A stretch of DNA of 64,000 bases from Takakia lepidozioides. Lineage: Eukaryota; Plantae; Bryophyta. Every line of letters starts with the position of its first letter. Position 1 is the first letter of the stretch. The position numbers and the translations under genes were made by a program. The notes under the pieces were generated by a model. The model saw only the letters and a list, made by a program, of their open reading frames with translations. It was not told the origin of the DNA and made no database searches. The stretch covers positions 51,956,001-52,020,000 of the forward strand of contig CM060732.1 of assembly GCA_030704615.1 (NCBI GenBank). The letters run 5' to 3'. Below are positions 10,745 through 43,238 of the stretch, one piece after another.

Positions 10745-13253
10745 TGGCCAAGACATTTTGGCAGACTCCGACACTTACATCCGTCTTTTGCAAGAGTGCA
10801 TCAACATGCAAGGCCTAGAAGAAGGAAAGTAGGTGCATGCCCACATTATCCGAACTGGGTTCAAGCCAAAAGTCTTCTTACTTAATACCCTTATGAACAT
10901 GTACGCCAAATGCAGGAGCGTGCTGGATGCACGGCAAGTGTTTGACAACATGCCTAAACGAGTGATATTTACCTGGAATATAATGATAGCAGGATATGCC
11001 AATTATGGGTGCGGGAGGGAGGCAATTGAGATGTATAAGCAAATGATGCAGGAAGGGATGACACCCAATAAGGTGACATTCATATGCATTGGTAAAGCAT
11101 GTGCCTGTCTGGCATCCCTGGAGAAGGGCAAAGGGGTCCATGCCGACATTATCAGAGTCGGGATTGCACCAGATGTGATTTTGGAGACTACCCTTGTTGA
11201 CATATATGCCAAATGTGGGAGCATGTGTCGTGCGCATACATATCGCTACACAACTACATCGCTGTCCAAAACCACACAACACATGTGCACACCACACACT
11301 AGTATACCACTAGTCCACCACTAGTCCAACCACTAGGCTACAACTAGTCAGTCACTAGGCTGCCACTATGCTGCCCACTATGGCAGTCACTAGTCCATAC
11401 AACTCTTGTGTGATAAAGAAGAAGAATACAAGCACAAGCTCATGCAAGCTCACAAAGCTGAAGCATAAACTCATGCATATATAACCTCATCACTCAAATA
11501 CAAGTCAAGCCAAGTGCACCCCACGCCATGGGGAATCCACACTACGGCGCCATAGCTAGGCGCGGTGAGGCTCAACTCGAGAAAGATGAGCCTCCCGCGC
11601 TTGCCGTGAAGATAACCACCCAAGGCCTAACTGCCTTGACCCCTGGATTGACACTTGGGCCCATCCCAAATATCAATATGTAAAAGCTAGCTATTTCCTA
11701 GCTAGTTTCACACTAGTGGTGAAATAACTTGACACATGCAATATGCGCGTCAAGTGTTTGATAATTATACTCATCATGGGTGTTGTATGGAGGCTTTTGA
11801 GATGTATGGGCAAATGATACATGAAGAGGTGACTCTGGACAAAATAACTTTCAATTGCGTTCTCAGGGCGTGTGGCAGCCTGGCAGCCCTGGAGAAGGGC
11901 AAAGAGGTTCATGCTAACATTATCAAATGTGGAATTCCACCGGATATCATCCTGGAGACTGCCCTCACAAACATGTACGCCAAATGTGGGAACATGAAGG
12001 ATACGCTTGAAGTGTTTGACATCATGGCTGAGTGTGATGTTGTGTCATGGAGCGCTATGATTGCAGGATATGCTCAGAATCACTGTGGTAGGGAGGCTTT
12101 TGGCATCTATGACCACATGATCAAGGAAGTCGTGGCACCCAACAAATCACATATATCTTCTCAATGCTTGTGCCAGCCTTGTAAGCCTGGAAAAGAACTA
12201 CATGCTGAGATAATCAAAGTTGGAATCCCAGCAGATATCATTCTGGACACTGCCCTTGTTAACATATATGCAAAATGTGGGAGCATGGAGGATGCCATTC
12301 AACTGTTTGACAATGCAGCTCAACGGAATGTGGTTTCATGGAATGCGGTGATTGCAGGATGTGGTTAGCATGGTTGTGCCAGGGACGCCCTTCAATTATT
12401 TGAACAAATGCAAGAGAAAGGGTTGAAGCCAAATAGTGTCACCTTTATTTGTGTTCTCTCTGCATGTAGCCATGTAAGCCGAGTGGATGAGGGTTGTCAC
12501 TACTTTTGATTACATGAATCAAGTTCATGACCTTGCTCCTACAGTGAAGCATTCTGGCCACATGGTGGATCTTTTTGCGCGTGCGGGAATATTGGTTGAT
12601 GCGGAGGAGTTTGCCAACAGAATGCCTATCAAACCAGGTACTTCAGTGTGGGGGGCCTTGCTTGGTGTTTGCAGAATTCATGGCAATGTGGCAGTAGTCG
12701 AATGTGTGGCAAAATGCCTCCTGCAGTAGAATCTGCAGGAGGCTGCGACTTATGTGCTGCTATCAAACATCTATGCTGCAACTGGCAGGTGGGACGATTC
12801 AACAAAAGTGAGAAAAATAATGCAGGACAGAGGTGTGAGAAAAGAACCAGGGCACAGCTACATTAAGGTGGACAACCGGGTGCACACATTCGTTGAAGAA
12901 GAGAATTTGCATCCACAAATTGAGGAAATCCATGCTGAGCTGAAGAGATTGTCTATGTGCATGAAAGAGGCTGGGTATGTACCTGACACACAGTTTGCAT
13001 TGCATGATGGGGAGGTGGAGCAAAAAGAAGTTTCTCTTTGTCACCATAATGAGAAGCTAACGATTGATTTTGGGCTCATGGGCATCCCCCTGGGATGCCC
13101 ATCCGTGTCATCAAAAACCTACAGGTGTGTGATGACTGCCACACCGCTACCAAATTCATATCAAAGATTATTGGTCGTACAATTGTTGGGCGGGATACCA
13201 ACCGCTTTCACCACTTCCAAGATGGGGATTGCTCTTGTGGGGATTACTGGTGA
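10745..13253 (+). pseudogene. PLS-class PPR-DYW (DYW:PG type, organellar C-to-U editing factor) pseudogene
   Basis: P/L/S repeats (NTLMNMYAKC, SWNAVIAG), E domain, PG box KEPGHSYIKVDNRVHTF, HNEK...CDDC deaminase motif and terminal CSCGDYW* (TGA 13251-13253). Contains in-frame stops (10830, 12366), several frameshifts and a solo-LTR insertion. Confidence 0.9.
11226..11734. mobile_element. Solo LTR-like insertion (509 bp) with 4-bp TSD CATG
   Basis: Termini TGTC...GACA, flanked by CATG at 11222-11225 and 11735-11738. Removing the insert and one TSD restores the PPR frame KCGSMQYARQVFD. Confidence 0.85.
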
Positions 13254-13369
13254 AAAAAACAGCAAGTGTGTCGCCTCAAGCAGGTAATAAACAAGTGTTT
13301 CATTGAAAACATCTCAACTGTCCCTGTGAACTACCCGTATGATCTCTTTGCCGCCAAAAACTTTAAAGT

Positions 13370-14395: not shown

Positions 14396-15880
14396 CTAGG
14401 GCGTCCCAGGGGTCGTGCTGATGAGCCCAAAACCAATGGCCAGCTTCTCACTCTGGTGATAGAGAAAAAAATTCTTTTTGCTCCTCCACCACATCTGCAG
14501 TACAAAGCGTGTGTTAGGCACATATCCCGCCTCCTTCATCTGCCTAGACAATCTTCTCAACTAAGCATGGATTTCTTTAATTCTGGGATGCAGTTTGTCA
14601 TCTACAACAAAGGTGTGCGTCTTGTTGCCAACCTTAATGCAGCAGCGACCTGGCTCCTTCCTAACCTCTCTGACCTTCATCATTTTTCTCACCTTTGCAC
14701 TATCATCCTCGCCTCCTTCATCTGCCCAGACAATCTTCTCAGCTAAGCATGGATTTCCTTAATTCTGGGATGCAGTTTGTCATCTACAACAAAGGTGTGC
14801 GCCCTGTTACCAACCGCAATGCAGCAACGACCTGGCTATTTCCTAAATCCTCTGACCTTCATCACTTTTCTCACCTTTGCACTATCATCCCACCTGCTAG
14901 CTGCAACATAGATGTTTGATAGCAACACATAAGTCGCGGCATCTTGTTCATCCCACTTGAGAATAGATGTTGCAGCACGTTCAGCCATCTCCACATTGCC
15001 ATGGATTCTACAGGCACCAAGCAAGGCCCTCCAAACCATAGCATGTGGTTTCATTGGCATTTTGTTAATGAGCTCCTCTGCCTCATCCAATTGCCCCATA
15101 TGTCCAAGAAGGTCCACCATGCAGCCAAAGTGCTTTACTGTCGGAGAGACACCATGATCTTGATTCAGGGAATCAAAGTAGCGTCTTCCTTCATCTAGTA
15201 GGCCACTGTCTGCTCAAAGGTATCCAAAGCCTCCATCCCACGTCCTTGCATATCCTGCAATCATCGTGTTCCATGACACCACATTTTATTCAACCATATT
15301 GTCGAACAACCCCTGTGCATCTTCAATGCTCCCACATTTGGCATACATGTCCACCAGGGCAGTGTTCAGAATGACGTTTGGTACCATTCCAGCTTTGACG
15401 ATATCACCATGGACCTCTTTGCCATTTTCCAAGGCTTCCAGGCTCACACATACATTGCAAATGCAAACAAACGTGACATGGTTGGGCTTCACCCCTCCGC
15501 GCATCATTTGCTCATAGGTCTCCAAAGCCTCCATCCCACACCCGTGCTGTGCATATCCTACGATCATCGCGTTCCATGACACCACATTTCGTTCAACCAT
15601 GTTGTCGAACACTCCCTCTGCATCTTCAATACTCCCACATTTGGCATACATATCCAGCAAGGCAGTGTTCAGAATGACATCTGGTACCATTCCAGATCTG
15701 ACAATGTCACCATGGACCTCTTTGCCCTTTTCCAAGGCTGCCAGGCTCGCACACGCATTGCAAATGCAAACAAACGTGATGTGGTTGGGCTTCACCTCTT
15801 CCTCCATCATTTGCTCATATGTCTCCAAAGCCTCGATACCACGCCCCTGCTTTGCATATCCATATCCTGCGATCAGTCTG
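14396..15880 (-). pseudogene. Second PLS-E-(truncated DYW) PPR pseudogene, convergent with the first
   Basis: PPR repeats in ORF 15286-15933 and E domain in ORF 14836-15120. The PG box is duplicated. DYW runs to HQSEKLAIGFGLISTTPGTP and then breaks off. Stops and deletions are present. Confidence 0.88.
14529..14890. repeat. Tandem duplication, 2 x ~182 bp, of the E+/PG-box region
   Basis: GCCTCCTTCATCTGCC starts at both 14529 and 14711, and both copies end in CTTTGCACTATCATCC. Confidence 0.9.
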
Positions 15881-17061
15881 ATGAGAGGGCAAATCGGGCT
15901 GAAATAGATTGAACAAGAAGGTTCCCTCACCACATTGTCCTTGACTTTGTGTCATGACTGATGGAGGATTAAACCGACCATCAACCAAAAGGACCTCTTG
16001 TATATGCTGCTTGTGTCCATGGTGGGGTAGTGTCCGATTGGTCTGTGAGAACCACCACGGTGTAGCTGAGCAGCCATAGATTGAAACACGACCTCCTAAC
16101 ACCAAGCTGACCCTCCTAAGCACCTTGTAAACTCCAAAGAAAAATACCAAATCGTGATACTAATAGGAAGAGCCAAACTTCTTCACCTTATACATTAAGA
16201 GAAAGCCACACCTTGCGATTATGGTTGTCCCACCATCGTGAAGGATCTTTAAAGAACTCATTCCAGCTCCGCTTCGTGCTCCAAGGTAGACTTTTGTGCC
16301 CAAAAATCCGGCAGCATCAACATTTTGCCAAGTTCCTTTACGGAGGGGGAGCTAGTGAGCTTTCAACAACATTCATGCTGGTCGCTTTGGGCTCCATTGC
16401 ACTCTCCACAACGAGGACATACGAACATGTCCAAATGTACACAGATGTTAAACCAGCTTATGTCTGCAGTGTGGAGATTTTGGAGTGGTCTCTGAAACGG
16501 AGCAGGAGTAGCTGAGCAGCGCCAGTCTTTGGGGACACGATTTTTGAAAGAGGGCATGATGTATGCTTGGGATGCCATGTAGCATGGGGAGGATGAAGGC
16601 ATGCAGGGGGGATGGAGGGCGATGCCATGCATGAGGGCATGATGGGAGGAGGGATGGGGATGCGGGAAAGGGCACGTCTCATGTCCTGGCAGCGGGAACA
16701 TGAGGCGCGGGAGGGCGTGCCGCGCGGCTGCTGCCGCGCGGTGTGCAGGCGTTGGAGCGGGGGTAGGCGTGGGGTGGGGTGGTGGGGGGGGGCTCCACGC
16801 TGGCGGAACCGGGCCCCTCGCATTCAACTCCAAGGCCCCATCTAATGCTTGGCATACTTTTACCAACCAAAGGGAAGATGAGTATGAGTAAAGTAAAGTA
16901 AAGTCTGTTCACTTGTTTGTGGGTTTTTATGTGAGGTAAAGTCTTGCAACCAGTATTTGTTACGTGGTTCGAGATCCCGTAAGCTTAGCCCTAATAATAT
17001 AGACGAGAGTGGTGGTCGCGCAGGCGAGCTTTGCAGGGTTTGGTTCTGTCTGGGAGCAGGG

Positions 17062-20000
17062 ATGCCGAAGCACAGCGAGGGGGATCACCTCCTCGTCTTC
17101 GAGAATGGACGCTTCGCTTATCTCTCAGTGCCACCCCAGTTTTCAACCTCCATCACAGACGAGGCAAAACTGTGCTTCATGGACCACCGCAAGGAGGCCT
17201 GGGATCCGTTGTCGGACATTTGTTGCTTGCAGGAGGCAGGACATGTGCATGCACACGTGCACCATGGCGATATCACAGAAGATATTTTGCTTGAGCAGGT
17301 TAAGATTCCTCTCTTTGCAATTCTTGAAAAAAACACATCGTCACGTGAGAAATCTGGAGAAAAAGTGGAATTTCTGTCTGGAAATGGTGAATTTTGCTGG
17401 TTGTGACATACATGTTGTGCTAGAGACCAAGTACGCTGCGTGAGTCAATTGAATCACACGTTCTTTGATGTATGCCTGTTTTGCAGTGCATGGAGGAGGC
17501 AGGCTGCACCCTACCAATGCTTCGGGAGCTGTCAGGCATGTGCAGACCTGTTTCACCGCACGATGACTCGGGTCACGAACATATGGAAGGATGTGGCCAC
17601 AACCAAATTGCTCATGGCGATCACTTTGATTGGCTCATACCTCTGAAGGACGGTTCTTTTGTGTTGAGCCATGCGCAGAGGACTGAAAATGGTGGATCAC
17701 GATTCATCGAACACGGGCGTCTGATTAAAGTGGGAGAAACTCTTGGCAAATTGACGAGGCGGCCCAAGCAGCTAGTTGATCTCTTCAGTTATGAGAGTCC
17801 TAAAAGGAAGGGGTATGAGAGCCTACCCCAAACAGATGAAATTCTCACAGCAACAGAGACAGACATTGTTAAGACTGGAAAACTTCAGTTGGATGGAAGC
17901 TGTACGCTGATGCCTTCTCCCAGAATGGGAAGGACAGTGGTCCAGGAAGATATGGTGAAGATAACTATCCCTGGTAATCTTAAAGTTTCTGGATTTGGGA
18001 AGACAACTCTTGATGTCATGGGAATCTGCTGTCCAAGTGAGGTTCCCCTGATTAAGAGGATATTGGAGCCCTTACCTGGAGTTGAGGAAGTATCAGTGAA
18101 CGTTACGTCCAAGACGGTCACCGTTCTTCATGATCAGTTATTGGTCTCGGATGGACAACTTGGTACTCAGCTTATACCCTTTCCTTATAGTTTCTGTGAC
18201 TACAGAAGGTGATGAAGAACCACACTTAATTTGGAAAGGCTGAGGGCTCTTTTTGTGGCCAAGACTAACTCCAGTAGTTGCTGCTAATGTGGTCTATTTT
18301 GCAGTAATTTAGCTTTTCAGAAGTTCAAATTAGGAAGGCCTTGGTTATATATCCGGTCCTTGACTCTTTCATGTTAATTTTAGTAGGACGTTTTCATCCA
18401 TGCCAGTCCCAACTCTAACATGTTTCTTTCTGTGACAGTAAAGGTTTTGAATGAAGCAAGTTTGGATGCCAGTATTCACCATCGAGGAGAATGGAAATCT
18501 GGCCGCAAGTGGCCTAGCCCTTGGACCATGGCCTCTGGTGTGCTGCTTGTACTATCCTTCTTCCAGTACGTCTGGCATCCATTACGATGGGTGGCATTGG
18601 GTTCTGTTGCTGTCGGTATACCACCTCTGGTCATAAGAAGTGTGGCTGCTTTGAAAAGCCTCATCCTTGACATCAACATTCTTATGCTTATTGCAGGTAA
18701 GTGAATTCAACGGTCAACTAGGTGATGATTATTTGAAACCTAAGTTTGGCAATGCTCTACAGACAGACACACTCTTTTGTAGGAAGAGTGACGAGGTTTA
18801 TTTCCCAACTGATGCATTCACTACGACTTTGTCATCACTTAAGAATACTTTTAAAGTTCAGGGTGGATTTAGTAGCTAATGTGCAGGGAATATTGAACCA
18901 TGTGGGATGGAATTCAGTTGGTGGTGCCATTGCACTGGGAGACTACCTGGAGGCTGGATCAATTGCCTTCCTTTTCACTCTTGCAGACTGGCTAGAATCA
19001 AGATCTAGTGATAAGGTAATTCTCAGTTTCATAAAATGCACCAGAGAGTAATGAATTTTGTTGGTCCTGCTTGTTGCAAAGAAGGCTTTTTCTTGGTGTG
19101 GAAGTCTGTGAAGGCTCGAAGGGTAGAGGTCATGTCAAATATCATGGAAGGTACATATGAATGTGCAATCCAAGGGGTTTAGTAGCCGGTCATGCAAGGC
19201 TTTCAAAGTTTTGCAGAGGCCACGTCAAGTTGCAGCAAAGTTAAAGTGCGTTTTCCTGGGAACAATTTCTAACAGGAGGTTAAGGTTCTGTTTCAAGAGA
19301 TGGTAAGAATAATGTATCAAGAGAACATTATGCTACTTAGTAAGACAGTGCAATAGAAAATTGGTAAGTCATCAACTTCCAGAGGTCTGCACTTGTATTG
19401 ACACCCTACTTTTCAATCTGGTTTGAATGGCACCTATTGTTGTTGTAGGCTCGGGCTGCATTAGCAGCTGTTGTGGATATGGCACCTCAGACAGCAGTGC
19501 TTTTTGACAGCGGGCTTTGTGTGCGTGTCGAAGATGTGAAAATAGCAACACTACTTGCTGTCAAGGCAGGAGAGTTGATTCCTATTGATGGAGAAGTAGT
19601 CTCAGGGAAAAGTTCTGTGGATGAAAGCAGTTTAACTGGTGAATCTATGCCAGTGGAGAAAGAAGCGGGAGCGACTGTGTGGGCAGGAACAGTGAACATG
19701 TCAGGTACCTAGCCACTTCAGGAGCAGTATTTAGCTGGAAAGCATTATTTGCCAGCCTCAGAAGAAGAACTGCATGTTCCGTCCCGAATTCCAGGTTTCA
19801 CCTACTTGTTGGCACTCGGTAGTTGCTGGAAGCTCAAAGAACATCTGAGGACGTTCCAGTGGAATTGACATAACTAAAGTGACATAAAAGGAGACCAAAT
19901 AATGTACAGGATGTTGCTGTTTTTTGACATCAAGCAATGTACAGGGTACATGACAGTGAGGACCACAGCTCTTTCAGAAGACTCGGCAGTTGCCAGGATG

Positions 20001-23000
20001 GTGAGGCTTGTTGAGGAAGCACAAAATCAGCGCTCTCGTACTGAGCTCATTGTGGAGAAATTAGCAAAGTATTACACACCTGGTATGTCTTGTATATCTG
20101 TGGAAAGCACATATTTGAAAACCATAACGCTCTATTTTATTTTTATTGTGGAACATTGACCACCCATAAAGGAAGACTTGTGGTGTGAATTTTTGGCCGA
20201 GTTTAAAGCTCTCCTAGCACCTATGGCCTTGGTATATCAATGAATGCCCACTTTTTTGTGCTTCATGTGATTTGGGTTTCCTTTTATGTTGGGTGGCACT
20301 TCAATATAAGCTTAGTGGTGTGTTGAGTGATGGCCATGACCTTTTATGAGGTTTGGAATGACGAACTGGGGATCACCCAGCCAGTGGCCTTTGACTTACA
20401 GTGGGCACTCCAACCAAACCTAGGTCTGTGGTTTTGTGAGAAGTGGTCAGTGTGGGGGGCGGGGGGAGAAGGGGGTGGTGCTTGCTTTCCTTCATCAAAT
20501 GGGTGATGGCAATTTGCGAGAACCGAGAGGTGTTCTCTGTTGGCATTACCTATAATTACGATGAGGGTGGTATTAAGTCCATCTTGTTGCTCCTGCTGCA
20601 GCAATTGTGGTGGTAGCGCTCATTATAGGAGTGGTCCCATGGGCATCGGGAGTGCACAATCATCGGCATTGGCTCTACCTAGCTCTGGTCCTGCTTGTGG
20701 TGGCATGCCCCTGTGCCTTGGTTATATCAACTCCTGTTGTGACCACGTGCGGGATTGCGCAGGCTGCTAGACTAGGACTGCTGATAAAAGGTGGAAGCTT
20801 TCTGGAGGTACTAGGCAGGTTGAAGGTTGTGGCTTTGGATAAGACGGGGACCTTGACTGAAGGGCAGTTTTGCGTGTCTGATGTGCTGGCAATTGACGGC
20901 ATCTCTACTGTTCAGCAGATTTTGTATTGGTATGCATACTTACGGATTTCTGCTCTTATCTTATGCTCCACTACGAGGACAATCATGATCCTGCACATGG
21001 TGTCCAGCCTGTGGTCCCTTGTCCCAACAGGTGACAGTGGTTATGCGTATTTATGAAGGTTTGCTTTGCAGCTAGCAGGCTCTGAGCAGAGTCCTGGAGA
21101 AAGCTAGGCCGTTGGTCCCACTTGTTATCTATGTCTATGTATATAGATGTTTATGTCCCACATGATCCATTGGAATTGCTGTGATGCATGAAAGCAGTAG
21201 TGTTGTCCTCCTGGGTCAGTTAGAATACCTGAAAACCTGCAGGCAATTCCTGGATGGTGACCAATTGAGAACCTTGTCAACCATACTGCTAACTGTGTTT
21301 TGCACCGTTATTTGGCTTTTAGGCTCGCTTCTGTTGAAAGCAAAGCCAGCCACCCATTGGCATCAGCACTAGTTCGCTATGCTCGCCTTCATGGGGTGGA
21401 AATCTCTAATGATGTCACTGAATTTGAGGTCATTGTGGGAGAGGGAGTCTCGGCAGTCGTCAAGGGGCGCACCATCCACATTGGAAATGCACGTATGGCT
21501 GCCCGTCTTGGTTGGGATACAGGTGTGTGCGTACAGACCCACAAGATTGAGAATTTCTATTGAAGATAATTGAACTGTTTCCAAGCATTCTTGGCTAATA
21601 CCCCTCCTGCACCATTATGTAAGAATGAAAAGGTCTGTTCAGAGCTTTCTTGCTAAGTCCTAGCCATTGAGCGTTTGTGACTTGTTCCCAACACCTGAAG
21701 ATTGTCTAGAGTGTTAAAACAAATGACACCACAGAGTCAGATGCATTTATGTGCTGCATTATCCTGAATCGCAATTTTTTGTTGTTGTTGCTGGATGGGA
21801 TGTATAGCTGCTGGTTGTGGAATAGTGGACACCTGGAGTAGCCAGGGAGCAACAGTAGGTTGGATTGGTGTGGACGAAGTAGCTGTTGGGGTTTATTGTG
21901 CTGCCGACCAGCTGCGAAAAGAAGCAGTGGAGGCAGTCGTGGAATTAAAGGTCTGCTCATGACTATTTCTTCCCCATGCTTCCTTCTCTATCTTCCCCCT
22001 TTTGATCGAGGTGGCTGCTTCCTTTTTGGTGTCATGTGTGTTTTTTTCCTGGCTCTTTTGTGTGGCTTCTTCAGACTTTCAAATCAATTGAGACTTGCAC
22101 ACGGACTTGTTGAGTTAGAGCCAGTGCTGGGTGGGTATGGGGGCAGACAAGGTCTCAAATCAGCTGGGTATGAGAACCCGCATTTGTAGAGAGCCGCTGG
22201 ATACATTGGGAGGGATACCCTTGTAGAGATCTGGGCTGCAGGTTCTCAGACATTCAGTACCTATTTGAATTTTTGGGGTATTTGAAGATTTCTTTGAAGT
22301 GACGACCTCTAGTAAACCCATAGTAACAAAAACACATATCTGGGTGATGGACAAACCAGTGGGTATGAACTCGGCAACACCTGAAACCGGTGGGTATGAG
22401 AAAATCGAAACCATGGAAGTGACCAGAATCACTGGCATAGGAGCTGCAAATAAACCCACGCTCAGAAATGGAGGGCATCTAATACCTCCCAACACTGCTT
22501 AGAACCAGATTGATTATATTATATGCTGAGTTTGCACCTACCTTCATGGCCTCTAGATCAGTTCAGTCTTTGCAGGCACTTGTGCCGAGGTCAGGAGCTC
22601 TCTAGGTTCGGTGACTTAGGAGTTGTTTTGATATCTACTGCCACTTGCACCAAATTAACAGTCAACTCAATGTACAACATAGTTATTTGGCCTTGATAAT
22701 CATCATGAGGAAGCAGCTTTGTCATTGTTGGGAACCAGGCGATTGTCATATTTACGATGCTCTTCAGTTGCATTGCTTCAGCCTAGACAAACATGCTGGT
22801 TTAATTTACCAATATGCTAGGATTTGTTGTGCTGCACAGAAACTCGGCATTCACATTGCAATGCTGACTGGCGACAGTTCTGCAGCAGCTGCCTCTGCAC
22901 ACAAAATGGTATCCTCATAGTCCAGTCAGAAATGCCACCTTTGATGATTCTCTTCGTTCTGTCCCAGACACTGTTGTTGGCTGCTTTTCCTGGTGGAGAT

Positions 23001-24887
23001 ACATGTGCAGATGTGCCAGGACCATAGAATTTCCTACTATTCTCGCAACGTCTATTGACGAGAATTATGTTCTCATGAGGAATGTTTGGGTTGCAGATTG
23101 GTGAAATTGACATTCATGCCCAGTTGCTTCCAGAAGATAAGGTGAGAATAGTCCGAGAATTGAAGGGAAGTGGAGTCACGGCAATGGTAGGAGATGGTAT
23201 CAATGACGGACCTGCATTGGCTGCAGCAGATATTGGGATTGCAATGGGGGTGGCTGGGTCAGCTGTTGCAATGGAAACAGCTGATGTAGCTTTAATGACA
23301 AACGATCTTCGGAAGTTGGCATTTGGAGTGCAGCTGGGCAGAAGCTGCCGCTGGAAAATTGGGCAGAATGTGACCCTTTCCTTGGTCACAAAGTTTGTAA
23401 TTATTGTGCTTGCAGCGGTAGGATATGCATCCCTTTGGGCAGCCGTGCTGGCAGACGTTGGGACTTGTCTGGTAGTCATCTTCAACAGCATGCGGTTGCT
23501 CAAACACAAGAAGTGTACTGATCAATGTTGCTCAACACCCAAGAGTCTGTCCAATTTTGCAGTCAGACATAAGCAGCTAAAACTGGAGGATAGTTGCTGT
23601 GCGAAATCTGGAATGGACATGAAATGTTCGGATGGTAAGTTGGTTGATTTGTGTGAAGAAGGAACTGCTGCAGTATCACACAGTCACAGGGGACTATTTC
23701 ATTGGTTGCACCACCACCATCATGAGAAGAAGTGTGAAGGGGAAATGAAGGGTTACACAGTGTGTTGCTCGATGGCGACCTCAGAAATCAAGCAGACTGC
23801 TGTACCTCGTTGCTCCAGTTCTAGGTGTGAGCCAGGGCTGCTCACCCCCAGAGGTAAAGGGAATCGCCATAGCTATGGCTATCATCATGAGGAAACTAAA
23901 GCTTCAATCATTGGTTGCTGCTCAAAAGCAGGGTCAGACATCAAGTCAAAGGGTGCTTCAGGGTGCTGCTCCAAAACAGGGTCAGAAATCAAGTCCAAGG
24001 TTGCTACAGGTTGCTGTGGAACAGGTTTGCATGAGAAAGGGGGAATCAGAAATCCACTAATTGGCAGTGCATCTAGTAGTGACCTCAGTGAGCTTCCGGG
24101 GGTGACTGCATATGGTGGTCTTGCCTCCTTGGATGGGTGCCATGAAGATGTAACTGGGATGGAGCACGAAGGTGGGGTTGCTACATGTTGTGAGACGTCC
24201 ATGTTTGGGGGGACAGGGAAAGGAATCCGGAGGAGACTCGGCACAAAAGAGAATTGTTCAAGTGAGAGTCACATTAGCAACACCTCATGTGGCCACCACC
24301 TGGAGGAGCCCTGTTTGCCAGCTTGCGTGGCTGCAAGCAACAGCCCGCAAGGCAATGGCCATGGTGGTTTTATTTCTTTGGATAAGGTTAAGGCCCAAGG
24401 GCTGTCGATTGAAGTTGAAACATGTCCCAAGCAGTGCTGCAGCAAGTCCCCTGCAAACCCCGGCCATGATCCTGTCAAGTCCAAGTCATCAGCTTCTGAG
24501 ATACCCTGTTTGAAAGAGAGTTGCAAAGCAAGTGGTGCCACTGGTATCTGCAGATCTCATGCCTCGGAAACAGTTCCATCATGCTGTGTGAAAGAGGAGT
24601 CGTGCAAGGCTTCTGCTTTACATGCCCCCAGTACAGCACATGGCAAGACAGCAACTTTTGATATGCCTCCCAAGTGTTGTACAAAAGATAGTGGTAAGGC
24701 AACTAGTAATTCAGGCAAAGTGTCCACCAGTAGCACACATGATTTTGAGACTTGTGCCCATAATGGGAACCTCACGTGTGGCATTGTGCCTACCTCTCCC
24801 ATCTCTTTATCAGGGTATGGTGTTAGCCCCGATCCATGCTGCACCAACCAAATAGGTTGCAAGTCTTGTGCTACAGTCTCCAGCTGA
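17062..24887 (+). CDS. HMA2: Heavy-metal P1B-2 ATPase (HMA2/HMA4-like Zn/Cd exporter), 11 exons, ~1397 aa
   Basis: Exons 17062-17298, 17487-18162, 18439-18696, 18918-19015, 19449-19704, 19945-20082, 20602-20929, 21323-21522, 21808-21950, 22840-22908 and 23097-24887 (4194 nt, in phase). Motifs GICCPSE, TGES, CPC, DKTGT, SHP and GDGINDGP. The start codon is inferred and the symbol denotes the subfamily, not proven orthology. Confidence 0.92.
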
Positions 24888-36920: not shown

Positions 36921-38060
36921 CAGGCATGCTTGGCTGGGTCGATCCATTTTGAAATGTCTTTGCAATGTCTGATGATGCTTAAAACGTCATCAGTTTCCAG
37001 GTCCTCGACCTTTTCGTCTTGAAGAGCCTGTTCAAGTCGATGTGTACAGTGAAGGGAAACATAAGTTTTCCCAAATTGGCCTCAGATTTGGGAACAGATC
37101 TCAAATCCCAATTATCTTTTTGCCACTGGACATGGCTGGGTGCTATCAAAGACAATAATGTAGAATCCACTTTCATATCGATTGTGAAGTGCAGAATTTC
37201 GGCAGTTTTTGGAAGTGGCCATCCGTCTACTTAATGGATGTATATTCCTGGACCTTTGGGCTGTTTGCGTTAATTATGTTACAGAACTTTCAATTGACAA
37301 GACAATGATATTGCACAAGCTCCTTCTCGGCCCACGGGCTGCTGCACACAATCCCTTTAAATCATCCTTTGTAAGGGGCATGTTCCAAGTGCAAATATGT
37401 TGAGAAAGTGTACATTCGACCCAAAGAAGAGCAAAGAGTAATACTGTCATGGACGATGAGGTTTATTCACTTAGTTATGCACAGGTTTTCAGAGGTTTTA
37501 GCATATGTAGGTCCTTAGGGCTCATTAGCTTTTTGTATTTTGGATACTTCCCATTACACCTTAAACACCGCTTCTTATAGATAGAGCATGGTGTGCAAGA
37601 ACTGTTAGCTAACCTGCAGATAGGTGACTATGAGTAAACTAGGTTAGTAGAAGGACAGTACACCTGATTAATGAATGAATCTCACCTGCCAGAGTACCTT
37701 GCAATTGACTCCCTGTTGATTGTACACGTGTTGTGGGAGTTTTAGCAACCCCTTCCTTGTGAACATTTAGTGGGTGTCTTTCACTCATTCATAACTGTCA
37801 TTCTCCCACCCAAAACAATGTGGATGTGGCAAATGATTAGTCCAGCCTCAACTCTTCACCAACTCTGCAATTATCACGTTCTTCCCAATGTGAAAAGAGA
37901 CTCACATAATTCATTGCTCAACAGCACAATGTACAGAGGCCCAGGGGGATATCATGATGGAATGCATTACACATGCACCCCAAGGTTTCAACTAAGGCCA
38001 ATTCCATCATTCTACTCTATCCATGCCCCAATATCTCCATGGGTCCTCCATGTCCAGGAT

Positions 38061-41000
38061 TCATGTAAGGTATGGCTGCAATCTTTCGCGGGCCACCTCT
38101 AATGGAGTGTTCATCATTTCCCAGATCTTTTCCCCTTGGAACAAAGTGTAGGTGAAGAAGGGCTTTTGCCCTTTCTTGATGGACATCTTCACAATCTCCA
38201 TGAAATACTTGAAATCGTCGACTGTCGCAATCACCTTCACAAAAGCAGACAATTTGTCAAAACTCTACCATGGCTAACCTCTATCTGTGCATGATAGGGG
38301 GCATATGTGAACACAGTGGTGTTGCAGGAAAGTACCTGGCAGCCGGCAGAGAACTTTTCAACCATATCTGTATACTTCGTAAGAAGAAACTTGTACTCAG
38401 CTGTGTCTTTGATACCCGCATGATGGATGTTCACTCCAAATAACCCTTCATCATCATGGCTGTGCCATACATACACGCACCAACTAGTCCATGAGACCTG
38501 CTACAAATGCCCCATAAAAGAGACAACCAGTTTTGGCTGGGAATAAGCTCTGACAGCACTTTTATCTTGATAGACAGTTGTTGTGTGGCACTATGCTGGC
38601 TGGGGCTTTGTGTAATGTCTCAAGAGACAGTACCTTCCAATTACTCCGAAGTCAAGCTTGCCATCACGGTCATGGTCACGCCACACCTTCACTGGTCGTC
38701 TTTGCAACAAAGCTTCATAACACCCATTGTGCATACCAACCTGTCACCTTCCAGTTACTTTCACCTGGTGTGGACAGCTGGACAATAACTGTCATCTCTT
38801 TCTGCTGTTTATATCTGTTTTAGTCTCGAGGCTTCTCTCTTTCTGAAGATCCTTTGGAGTTGGGGCTAGATATAGCAAAATGAGCAAAGTGAAAAGATGG
38901 AAATGTCCCCGTCCCACTGCTTACCCACCCACAGAGAAAGAGGGAGAGAGAACGGAGAAACACACATGGAGTCTAACTCCTTAGTGACATACAAGTAATG
39001 TTTTCAACTTCAGCCATCAGTACTAGTGAACGAGGAGCAAGGAGCTTGCTGAAGGAAACTCCAGAAGGAAGCAGCATGAAACTTGAAGGTGACCTGGTCA
39101 ATATATAGGCTTTAAGTCATTGCAAACCTCATAGGCATCCTGATACTGCCCAGGACAAAGAATAGCCGTGCCACCAGGGCCACCCCAACCCAGTGTTAAC
39201 CACGCTCTCCCTGGGTCCACAGATGCCGTATATGTTGTCACCTGATCCACCATAGCAGCAGTCCTTAGATTTCATTCCACTAGAACTGGACACAATGGGA
39301 TCTACAGTGGTCATCAGGCTCACCTTGGTTGCAAGGTGGGTTGCCCCTTTTCCAGGCCCCGCAGTACTATATCTGGCAGACCTAGTTGCTAAGACTGAGC
39401 AAAATCTATGCTTTGGATCCAACAAAGTTACCAGGGCTGAATCATCATGATATAAATCATGTGCTCGAGATAACCATAGATGGTTGAGATTCAGTGACGT
39501 ACCACCCACTCAGGATTTTTGCCACGTTTGGAGTTAGTGCAATAAACCACGGACAAGTGATCGTCAAATGCCCCCGGCTCATCGGATGGATTTCGCACGC
39601 CAATGATATTAAGCTTATAAGGCTCCTCATAGAATTCATACCCATTCTCTTTGCATGCTTCACGAACTGCCTGCACAGCCAGTGAAACAACAATGCATCT
39701 GGTGCTTGAGGCCACAAACATGAGACCACAACTCGTTTCAAATACACTGAAAAATCATGTCAAATATTGTTCACACAGTTTTTTCAAACCTCAGATTAAG
39801 TGTTATGTGCATTTTCAAGGACACTCTTGTTCAGTGACAAAAACCAAACACCTTGACCTGAGGTCTAAAGCATTGAGCAACCTTCAAGCACTCAAAATCC
39901 TTCAAACTTTCACATGAAACTTGACTCGACCAGGATAGGATTGAAGAGATAGATACCCCAAAGTTCAACTAGTATTGCTATTCTTTTGATGAGCATGCAT
40001 TCTCAGATCGATATTCCTAATGGGTCACCCCTTCATTATTGATGCCCTAATCTATCTGTCTTTACGGTACTTTCCCGGGCTAATTGGAAGTAAGGACCTC
40101 AAACAAAGACTCATGGGATGAGAGAAACACCTCGGCATAGTTGTGTGCCACCTCGCCTACATAGGTCTGTCGTGTGCTAGTCTCCAGCACAATTGCAGTA
40201 CATGCCTTCGTACCTGCAAAACAGCTTAGCGCAGCTCCCAAGAGGACCGCTGCCACCCATCTCCACCTCCCAGTGTTTTCCTCTCTGTCCACCACATCTC
40301 CAGTCATATGCATATCTTGGACTACAATCGTCAGCACTAGAGCACCAACCATGCATAGTGAGTCGATTCTGAGAACAGTGGGCAACAATGCTGCTTTAAC
40401 AGTTCCTGCTGCAAACTTTCTGCTCGAAGAACTGAGCCTGAATCCTCATGCGACATCCATATGGTCTTACTACAGATGTTGTGTTAGAAAGTCTGGAGGT
40501 TAGTTGGATCCTTCATCTAAGCTGGTCTGGTGTATGAGCAGATACCCTGTCCCTCTCAAACCCACAAGAATTTGTGCAAGAAAGTGGTTTTTGTACAACC
40601 ATTTGTAATCAGGTGTGGACCAAGAGAAGAAATAGCAGCAGATTGCAGAAATCTTACCCATCATTGGGGCTTGCACTGCCGCCCCCATCATTGCTGTCAT
40701 CCCCTCCCCATCCATCACTGCCCCTCGCTCCTCCATCTCCCTCACCTCCACTTACTAGTAAGTCAAGCTCTATGGCCTGAGGAAACCTGATGGATACTCC
40801 CACATGGCTTTTGCATGATCTCAGAATTTTCCGGGGAGAAAACACTATTATTGCTGTCATTCCAGTGGGAAAGCAGTCTTGTACTGAGATAGCATTATGG
40901 GGTCTAACAGCAGCAGGTGAAAGATATCTTGAAGATATCTTGAAGGTTGTAACCTTCAAACTCCGTTCAAGCTTTTGTGTAAGATAAGGAAGGAAAGTCG

Positions 41001-41124
41001 AAACTGGACTCGAACACTTCCCAAACTGCTGCATGAGGAGATTTCTTTGAGCGGGGAAGAGGGCACCATAAGAAGCAGATCTACCACCGAAGAGTGAGGA
41101 TGACAATGAGTATCCAACAGCCAT
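38061..41124 (-). CDS. Predicted plastid-targeted membrane protein with a bacterial/phage-type YkuD (L,D-transpeptidase)-like catalytic domain, 7 exons, 463 aa
   Basis: Exons (minus) 41124-40658, 40368-40131, 39670-39503, 39241-39128, 38740-38634, 38459-38336 and 38234-38061; all GT-AG, phase-consistent, 1392 nt, no stops. Domain motifs: KLNIIGVRN..FDD, SVDPG...GTAILCPGQY, GMHNGCYEALLQ..PVKVWRDHDRD, GLFGVNIHHA...FSAGCQV...DFKYFM...FTYTL. The joins of the two 5' exons are less certain than the five domain exons. Confidence 0.8.
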
Positions 41125-43238
41125 TCTGAAGTGGATTTCTCAAATCTGCACAACCAGCAACCCACTTTCATCCATCATGTAGCACATTGTCTCTTTCTAC
41201 CTTCCATTTCTCTCGCCATTCCAAGATTTAATATCTAAGAATCCTTTCTGTGCGTAGCCTGCACTGCTATAATCAGATTCATCAAGGAGAATATGATTAT
41301 GTACTACCATGACATGGGAGCCTCCATCCAAAAGGGCTCTTTAAGCATACATGCCTGCATAAAGCGGGACATATATCTCAACTTTTAGCTGTTTGAAGAG
41401 AAATTATGGAAATCAAGAGGCAATGCATCAAGATTTCCAAATTTCTGCGGTGTTCGAAAGCAAGGGCAAGGGAACAAGTCCAGGACATAACCCCTGCATC
41501 TGAAGTAGAAGTAGCCAAGGTTTTTTGCCCTTGCGGATACTTGGCAAAAAAAGGCAATTATACACACAAGGTACAGAGAAAATTGTGCTTCATGGCTAGG
41601 TTTGGTGGATTTTTGGGGATCTCAATTGCCAAAGTCCAAAACACTGGCAACAGGTTCATTGCAGTCATACCACATTGGTTGGTAATTGCTCTGTCTAGGT
41701 TGCTTTGCTCATGTTCTTATTGGCTCTCCGATTTCTGGGTTCCTAAGTGTTGCAGCCTTTAACCTCGTCGGAAATTGCTGCTTCTAGTCTGGTCTACCGC
41801 ACGTCTTCTTCACTGAACAATCCATCTTGGACCTTACTTCCTTATGCATTTCCCAACAATAAACACAACACTGACGTGGAAGAAAATTCACTACGGGTCT
41901 GGTTGACCCTGCACAAAACACCTGTTGTGAAGAATGACTAACCTTCGCAGCCGATTTTTTGATGGGAAGGCAAACCGCCTTCAGACCTCACGTATCAGAG
42001 TTCCATCACAGATCACATCCTCCTCTTCCCAAATGCTCAAATTGAGACCAACAACAATAAACCCATTAAACTCGACGCAGCTGAAAGCCGCAGACTCTAC
42101 AGAATCCGCTCCAGTCACTGCAATAGCAGCAGCAGGAGCTGCTGAATCTCTGTGACTGCCAACAGAACAACATCCTGCTGTGGACATATCCAAATCAGAA
42201 AAGCCAAGGGGAGAACAGGACAAGCGCAAGTTGCAAGCAGTGCCAGCCGGCATCTGCGAGAGGCAGTTACTATTATTAATATTAAGCGTCAGCTTCTTCA
42301 ATGCCCTTGTTTTCATCCACATTTCAGATGCACTGTGAAGTTTTGACGGCGTATCTCCATCTCTCTTGGGAAACCTTGACACTCCCTCCGTCGACAGAGT
42401 GCTTTGGTGTGGTGCTGAACACTCCTGTCTGATGTATCCACCATCTTTGTTATATCTTCCACCCAATGAAAGTCTTGCATGGTTGAGCTGATTGAACCAC
42501 CTCAATGAAATTTTGATGGAGGCTGGAAATCCATTTTCACGATTCCAAGAAGTAACAGAAATCGAAGTGTTCATGAAATTGCTTCCCAGCCGCAATCACA
42601 GTTGTGATCGGAGGCTACATGCACACGATCTGCGTCTTCGTGTTTGAACAATACAATCTCAAAGATCCAGTGGATCTCATCTACAATCAACCCTACATAT
42701 AAGGTGAAGTGGCTCTTAGTTACACCCAAGTCAGTTTTCGACACAGAGTGAGAGAAGACTCAACTGACTCGCTATGAAGAGCATGCAATTACATGTACCA
42801 TGTCCAAAATTCAGTAGGAGTTATGAAGATTTTGGGCCCTAAAAATTCTGTGAATTCCAAGTTACAGCTCACAAATTTACATCTGCATTCCTACGGTTCC
42901 ACAAAGTCAAGCGCTCCAAAACAGTGTAGGAAGGATCTTTAGTTTTGAGACCTCATCTCCGCCAGATACGGATCCGGAGGTATACCCATTTGATTGGCAG
43001 CTCTCAAAATTTCAAAGAACTAAGGGAGAGTATGGAACCATGGGTATTTAATTTGAAAACAACCAATCAAATATGCCTTCAAATTAAGATCCATGAAAAA
43101 ACTGCCAGGTTTTGATTAGATCCATTGGATCTTTGAGGTTTATGCTAGTATCCAGATCCATAGGATAGGGAGAGAGAAGACGCCAGCAGTGACCACCGTA
43201 ATTAAGAGCCTCTTCACCTTTCGGCTATTGCCCCCTTT

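Follow-up and report, generated by a model that had tools for sequence, protein, structure and literature searches.

To our knowledge, all YkuD-fold enzymes characterised so far have one target, the L,D bond at the meso-diaminopimelic acid (mDAP) of peptidoglycan stem peptides, on which they act through a cysteine thioester. The acceptor that meets this thioester sets the outcome: with water the enzyme is a carboxypeptidase or endopeptidase, with the amine of mDAP it forms 3-3 or 1-3 cross-links, with a protein lysine it anchors that protein and with a free D-amino acid it performs an exchange. The accepted plant peptidoglycan toolkit, built around MurA-G, MraY, DDL and PBP, also includes a few hydrolases such as DipM. 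Here we describe a gene on the minus strand of a 64,000-nucleotide stretch of the genome of Takakia lepidozioides (GenBank assembly GCA_030704615.1, contig CM060732.1, positions 51,956,001 to 52,020,000; hereafter the window), whose product ends in a domain of bacterial and phage type. What is known in it is the YkuD fold and its chemistry; what is new is the family, the plant host and the setting. Our preferred reading, held with roughly even confidence, is of an expressed plant gene for a YkuD-fold Cys/His protein, most likely an L,D-carboxypeptidase or endopeptidase that trims or opens plastid peptidoglycan.

Published accounts count ten proteins in the plant toolkit (MurA-G, DDL, MraY and PBP; PMC10784329, PMC12681378), identify moss DipM as an M23 metallopeptidase (PMC4015805) and list 57 families among the horizontally acquired genes of Physcomitrella (PMC3493653). 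None of these papers, nor a 2025 review of L,D-transpeptidases (PMC12729407), mentions a YkuD-like plant gene, and a full-text literature search for YkuD or LD-transpeptidase together with plastid or land plants returned nothing relevant, the study of moss hydrolases by Utsunomiya et al. 2021 lying outside its scope. A sequence-only reading of the window, which had noticed the domain without recognising it among described plant peptidoglycan genes, holds in this respect within the literature searched.

The gene is an intact, spliced and expressed plant nuclear gene. Its coding sequence of 1308 nt (435 amino acids and a stop) is divided among seven coding exons by six introns of 101-460 nt, all of them GT..AG, and the C-terminal 228 residues of the protein form the enzyme domain. 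The exons follow in order of translation, with RNA contigs taken from the public run X1:

40658..41124, minus strand: coding exon I, from ATG 41124-41122, 155 codons plus 2 nt, drawn from the open reading frame (ORF) list and the X1 contigs
40131..40284, minus strand: coding exon II, 1 nt plus 51 codons, both junctions present in X1 contig 3
39503..39670, minus strand: domain exon 1, 56 codons, ...YKLNIIGVRNPSDEPGAFDDHLSVVY..., with the family-invariant N, R, F and D inside
39128..39241, minus strand: domain exon 2, 38 codons, VTTYTASVDPGRAWL...GGTAILCPGQYQDAYE
38634..38740, minus strand: domain exon 3, 35 codons plus 2 nt, VGMHNGCYEALLQRRPVKVWRDHDRDGKLDF..., with the invariant H, Q and R-D inside
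38336..38459, minus strand: domain exon 4, 1 nt plus 41 codons, GLFGVNIHHAG...VEKFSAGCQ
38061..38234, minus strand: domain exon 5, 57 codons and the stop TGA 38063-38061, VIATVDDFKYFM...PFFTYTLFQGEK..., then a C-terminal tail
38026..38060, minus strand: 3' untranslated region, minimum extent, X1 contig 1 reaching 38026

One codon is split (2+1) across domain exons 3 and 4. The gene extends beyond the region first noted, with exons I and II lying upstream and joined to the domain in RNA contigs; the putative start codon, ATG 41124, is situated ahead of the X1 cover, which stops at 41037. The five domain exons were recovered by a hidden Markov model (HMM) of 112 bacterial and phage members from which plant rows had been removed. 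Run against the 2134 stop-free six-frame pieces of at least 20 amino acids in the 64-kb window, this model matched these five and no others. They share the minus strand and succeed one another in profile order (positions 6-58, 59-98, 97-128, 131-192 and 155-197), with E values from 2.2e-12 to 8.3e-7 (domain exon 1, 2.2e-12; exon 2, 3.6e-7; exon 3, 1.2e-10; exon 5, 8.3e-7). Because a plant-free model picks only those five pieces, and in order, the exon set is more than chance. The sequence-only reading had placed five minus-strand exons at 38061-39670, joined in phase by GT-AG splicing; the DNA reads exactly so, and both the model and the junctions agree. Its broader claim of an intron-bearing plant gene of bacterial or phage type is likewise borne out by the six GT-AG introns, the transcripts and the matches to a purely bacterial and phage profile.

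Contigs of run X1 contain 22% of the sampled words from 37700-41300. Four contigs, at least 99% identical to the window, are confined to exons and skip the introns at plus-strand CT..AC ends, equivalent to GT..AG on the minus strand. They read through the junctions 40658|40284, 40131|39670 and 38634|38459, and contig 2 has a loose end of 12 nt at 38334, which in reverse complement reads as the beginning of the last exon; with this loose end included, X1 supports four of the six junctions. Exon I is covered over 40658-40742 and 40765-41037, and contig 1 spans 38026-38236, comprising domain exon 5 and the 3' end. Domain exon 2 is absent from the X1 contigs, and run X2 yielded nothing. Furthermore, the junction 40658|40284 places a hydrophobic stretch, LCMVGALVLTIVV (40285-40388, in ORF 40080-40388), within intron 1, and therefore the mature protein has one hydrophobic segment, not two.

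A scan of metagenome contigs from the Joint Genome Institute with domain exon 1 revealed the same gene on L086-L090 (contigs of up to 77.6 kb, such as Ga0116227_10000477), from metagenomes that we take to be moss-associated, bringing the plants with the gene so far to two species. Exon borders and intron positions are identical to those in Takakia, intron lengths vary, splice sites are canonical, and similarity between the two species, in DNA and in translation, is limited to the exons. Amino acid identity is 50% in exon II and, across domain exons 1 to 5, 77%, 92%, 77%, 83% and 67%. Over 207 aligned codons the proportion of nonsynonymous differences (pN) is 0.107 against a saturated synonymous value (pS) of 0.75, a comparison that indicates an old divergence with what appears to be strong purifying selection. 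In L091, a transcript of the orthologue from another sample, domain exons 1, 2 and 3 are directly joined, as are 4 and 5. This confirms 39503|39241 and 39128|38740, the two junctions uncovered in X1. RNA, which the sequence-only reading had named as the check on its splicing, thus supports four of the six junctions in Takakia itself and the other two (domain exons 1/2 and 2/3) in the orthologue. Domain exons 3 and 4 are separated by an intron that behaves differently in the two plants: it is spliced out in X1, unlike in the orthologue, where it is kept in L091 (338-471), in L114, L115 and L116 and in the products of P0495-P0498. Every orthologue transcript contig that spans this intron retains it, and the ORFs run through it out of frame.

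The relatives of the domain are bacterial and phage proteins, which make up a very large family. Pfam and NCBIfam match no single exon and no phage homologue; in PHROG, domain exons 3 and 4 match phrog_3000, of unknown function (exon 3 at E 6e-5), and hypothetical proteins of 202 amino acids from crAss-like phages are collinear with all five domain exons. In a library clustered at 50% identity, 4029 family representatives reach E<=1e-3 and 1140 reach E<=1e-30. Named sources among the matches are mainly Chitinophagaceae and other Bacteroidota, a taxonomic picture biased by the Bacteroidota-specific patterns used in the contig scan with alignment A7. Three word-indexed protein searches and an exhaustive search of representatives gave only bacteria and phages among the matches listed and are uninformative on plant orthologues. 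Structure-based Atlas clusters fall in Uroviricota and Bacteroidota, with one cluster from Cyanobacteriota fused to PG_binding_1. The partner domains of longer members are Amidase_2 with LysM, Amidase_2 alone, one or two copies of PG_binding_1, or an SLT lytic transglycosylase; the plant gene is without such a peptidoglycan partner domain. Together, partner domains and Atlas clusters confirm what the sequence-only reading had put forward, namely a family of phages, Bacteroidota and cyanobacteria often fused to peptidoglycan-binding domains. In the crAss-like phages themselves (Intestiviridae; L001:2590-3198 and L002:2587-3195) the family gene follows a PD-(D/E)XK exonuclease or helicase gene. 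In L002 it sits upstream of a terminase gene, the L001 record ends before any terminase, and the setting is not evidently that of a lysis module.

Structure prediction points to the YkuD beta-sandwich as the fold of the family. The AlphaFold model of P0167, the closest sampled bacterial member (residues 1-205; alignment of 117 rows, with the plant exons as separate rows), has a mean predicted local distance difference test score (pLDDT) of 96.3 and a predicted TM-score (pTM) of 0.92. In an exhaustive comparison with 48,161 representative PDB chains, the top 20 are all YkuD-fold at Z 5.9-8.9, and the next follows at 3.2. These proteins are the L,D-carboxypeptidases Pgp2 and Csd6 together with Bd1075, LdtGo, Ldtfm, LdtMt2, LdtMt5, YcbB, LdtA, DpaA and the type VI effector Tlde1a. 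The best Foldseek match is 8qzg (LdtGo; E 3.8e-3, probability 0.97); spurious rows aside, L,D-transpeptidases account for almost all the rest. The Pfam families touched most often are YkuD, by 6 of the 117 members (best E 0.0045), and Tlde1_dom, by 5.

The candidate catalytic residues are conserved. In P0167 numbering, N30, R35, D46, H101, Q110, R119-D120, N142, H144, S159, G161, C162 and L193 are invariant or nearly so among the 112 non-plant members. H144 and S159-x-G161-C162 are conserved in 100% (the Gly in 95%) and are present in the plant protein, which carries the consensus at every invariant column and at 38 of the 43 columns conserved to at least 80%, a count that takes into account that fragment rows overlap and that a first GTG codon is printed as M. 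The candidate catalytic His is encoded at 38425-38423 and the candidate nucleophile Cys at 38341-38339; the ranges aligned in the comparison with PDB chains take in both residues. From His to Cys is 18 residues in the family, the same spacing as between His336 and Cys354 of LdtMt2. In the plant an insertion of some 12 residues (IKDTAEYKFLLTKYTDM, window 38372-38410), absent from every bacterial or phage row inspected in full, raises this spacing to 30. The orthologue has IKDAAEYNLLLTKYTDM at this point, and the insertion is well conserved between both plants; its sequence is amphipathic-helix-like, and a lid covering the active site is one form that it might take. The canonical YkuD motif is phi-G-phi-H-G-[ST]-(X)10-[ST]-x-G-C-phi-R-[ML] (PMC12729407), and the family consensus does not fully conform to it: in FGINIH[RKH][AS]...WSAGCQVF the His, Ser, Gly and Cys are kept, and HG[ST] and C-phi-R are replaced. 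The order of Cys, strand, helix and final strand agrees with the YkuD consensus (PMC12729407).

The rest of the window is typical land-plant nuclear content. PPR-E-DYW ORFs, of the organellar RNA-editing factor type, lie at 11736-13287 and 15286-15933, with both strands represented, and the ORFs at 17472-24887 encode a heavy-metal-associated (HMA) domain and the C-terminal portion of a hydrolase domain of the haloacid-dehalogenase type, and probably belong as exons to a gene for a heavy-metal P-type ATPase. An Rfam scan of the window found no match, and an exact look-up of seven of its ORFs found none in the protein collection. These surroundings bear on the view of the locus as contaminating bacterial DNA, a dead insertion of recent date or a functionless pseudogene, a reading to which the bacterial and phage affinity of the domain lends some colour and nothing else does. 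Six GT-AG introns, plant-type neighbours (PPR-DYW) and an orthologue with identical intron positions leave it scarcely credible, and contamination and pseudogene alike are contradicted by the spliced transcripts, the retention of all invariant residues and the low pN relative to pS.

The relatives bear on whether the enzyme cuts or joins. Two isolates, Flavisolibacter nicotianae (L069) and Longitalea luteola (L053), have the family gene directly behind an Amidase_2 gene, and in L053 its start codon overlaps the Amidase_2 stop codon. The protein encoded before the Amidase_2 gene has PG_binding_1 in L053 and an endolysin-PHROG match in L069, making a three-gene Chitinophagaceae cassette (L069:1634-3600, L053:1584-3657) of a PG_binding_1 or endolysin-like protein, an Amidase_2 protein and the YkuD-like member. 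A Chitinophagaceae member matches phrog_3000 at 3e-37 and the C-terminal part of the 'endolysin' phrog_33083 at E 1.3e-15. The context of these Chitinophagaceae and fused relatives is peptidoglycan-lytic. Because the relatives are fused or adjacent to muramoyl-alanine amidases, lytic transglycosylases and peptidoglycan-binding modules, hydrolysis is the most likely activity by analogy, and it would be favoured only mildly over cross-linking.

A true L,D-transpeptidase would instead use an amine acceptor, either the mDAP of a neighbouring stem in 3-3 cross-linking or the lysine of an envelope protein in anchoring, and would provide plastids with a cross-linking route independent of PBP. Such an enzyme would account for the YkuD fold, for LdtGo (8qzg) as the best Foldseek match, for the many L,D-transpeptidases at Z 6-8.6 and for a hydrophobic segment followed by a catalytic domain, as in membrane-anchored L,D-transpeptidases. 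The family spacing of 18, equal to that of LdtMt2, points the same way. So does the likeness of the motif to the YkuD consensus (PMC12729407). However, the contexts of the relatives are lytic, not synthetic, the L,D-carboxypeptidases Pgp2 and Csd6 rank level with the top structure matches, HG(S/T) and GC-phi-R give way to H[RKH][AS] and GCQV, and the plant protein has its 12-residue insertion between His and Cys. Transpeptidation is thus a possible but somewhat unlikely activity for the plant enzyme.

The N-terminal half of the protein bears on where the enzyme works. Its first 60 amino acids are rich in Ser and Thr (24%) and poor in acids, with no Asp and a single Glu; a Gly/Asp-rich linker (...SDGWGGDDSNDGGGSASPNDG) follows this Ser-rich start, and exon II then encodes a moderately hydrophobic segment, WRWVAAVLLGAALSCFAGTKACTAIVL (maximum Kyte-Doolittle 19-residue mean 1.69), which could be a membrane anchor or sorting signal. 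The orthologue is laid out alike, with a Ser-rich start, a Gly/Asp linker ending ...GDG and a WRW-hydrophobic segment. By composition and hydropathy there is no signal-peptide-like hydrophobic core at the start, and the N-terminus would fit an organelle presequence better than secretion. This matters for a further reading, in which the gene is a domesticated lysin directed against bacteria or cyanobacteria, or an enzyme of the mitochondrion or another compartment unrelated to plastid peptidoglycan. The family does resemble an endolysin catalytic module, and its nearest sampled relatives are Bacteroidota, which fits horizontal transfer rather than inheritance from an endosymbiont. Against this, a Ser-rich, acid-poor N-terminus that resembles organelle presequences and lacks a signal-peptide core weakens the antibacterial lysin, and the architecture has been conserved across a divergence in which synonymous sites are saturated. 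We regard an antibacterial or non-plastid role as improbable.

In the preferred reading of a plastid L,D-carboxypeptidase or endopeptidase, the Ser-rich N-terminus, Gly/Asp linker and hydrophobic segment would deliver the domain to the plastid envelope and hold it there. The Cys of SAGC, activated by the His of NIH, would attack the L,D bond within a stem peptide of peptidoglycan to form a thioester acyl-enzyme, as in other YkuD-fold enzymes. Water would resolve this intermediate, giving L,D-carboxypeptidase or L,D-endopeptidase activity, and plastid peptidoglycan would be trimmed or opened, for example at plastid division. Both the substrate and the choice of hydrolysis over transfer are what we infer for the plant protein.

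Several points weigh against this scheme. The YkuD fold is equally compatible with transpeptidation and hydrolysis, and we know of no assayed enzyme in the family. The predicted fold of the plant domain is carried over through the alignment from the model of a bacterial member, the model itself not being the plant's. It is N-terminal composition that suggests a plastid location, and the exon II segment of the orthologue is less hydrophobic, at 1.18. Many bacterial members are without an N-terminal signal peptide, some having a C-terminal hydrophobic tail (alignment A7), and such signal-less members would need a holin-like route to the wall. At the level of profiles, no exon, phage protein or member reaches the gathering threshold of Pfam YkuD (PF03734), a profile search of PDB sequences found nothing relevant, and hhalign against a profile of E. 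coli LdtA/B/C/E/DpaA gave E 0.34 with only SxGC and the following helix aligned; against E. coli LdtB alone it was not significant. Of the sequence-only claim of an L,D-transpeptidase-like YkuD domain, the fold (Z 5.9-8.9, Foldseek probability 0.97) and the invariant His...SxGC therefore stand; an L,D-transpeptidase in the narrow sense is not borne out, similarity to Pfam YkuD and to the E. coli Ldts being below significance.

The provenance of the gene is a related question. Summed per-exon scores, which come from biased sampling and are not a tree, reach up to 195 bits for single-domain Bacteroidota, 115-152 bits for PG_binding_1 fusions and 373 for the plant orthologue. On these sequence scores, a gene gained horizontally from Bacteroidota or their phages is mildly favoured over one inherited from cyanobacteria. 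At its most ambitious, the case would be that in bryophyte-grade plants an unrecognised YkuD-like Cys L,D-transpeptidase, acquired from Bacteroidota or their phages, cross-links plastid peptidoglycan or ties it covalently to envelope proteins as a second, PBP-independent way of building the wall, and that its family is a widespread, unnoticed peptidoglycan enzyme of crAss-like phages; we think this combination unlikely.

Some plants retain a peptidoglycan wall round their chloroplasts, and the Takakia gene is a newly proposed candidate for its construction or trimming. A conserved, expressed YkuD-fold enzyme would add L,D trimming, 3-3 cross-linking or protein anchoring to what is done to that wall. 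Beyond plants, the analysis offers a predicted fold and a likely substrate for a very large family, common in crAss-like gut phages and Bacteroidota, whose thousands of members have no function in Pfam, NCBIfam or PHROG. It would also be a further case of a eukaryote domesticating a bacterial or phage wall enzyme, with introns and an added N-terminal address.

Compared with described YkuD-fold enzymes (PF03734; LdtMt2, Ldtfm, B. subtilis YkuD, H. pylori Csd6, C. jejuni Pgp2, E. coli DpaA and Salmonella Tlde1a), the family has the same predicted fold. It shares with them an invariant His with an invariant SxGC some 18 residues further on, then a strand, a helix and a final strand, and its relatives are likewise linked with peptidoglycan-binding modules. 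Unlike them, it has the motif NIH[RKH][AS]...SAGCQV in place of HG[ST]...[ST]xGC-phi-R, lacks a significant sequence or profile match, and carries an additional alpha/beta portion at the N-terminus (about 200 residues compared with about 130), to which the plant adds its 12-residue insertion. LdtGo (8qzg; PMC10864386) is the closest single structure, as the best Foldseek match and the longest VIA-aligned stretch (169 residues, Z 8.1), yet identity is 13% and the root-mean-square deviation 4.4 A. This 1,3 L,D-transpeptidase comes from Gluconobacter oxydans, belongs to a 'YkuD-like' outlier family of Alpha- and Betaproteobacteria, and is synthetic, not lytic (PMC10864386). In phrog_3000 and the C-terminal module of phrog_33083 the comparison is with the family itself, these phage and bacterial proteins differing from the plant gene in having no introns, transit-like N-termini or insertion. 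Beside the known plastid peptidoglycan genes of non-seed plants (MurA-G, MraY, DDL, class A PBP and DipM/LytM), the Takakia gene is alike in being nuclear, intron-bearing, of bacterial type and furnished with an N-terminal extension, and its presumed substrate is plastid peptidoglycan. It differs from them in its Cys/His fold and chemistry, and in an origin that may lie with Bacteroidota or their phages, not with cyanobacteria.

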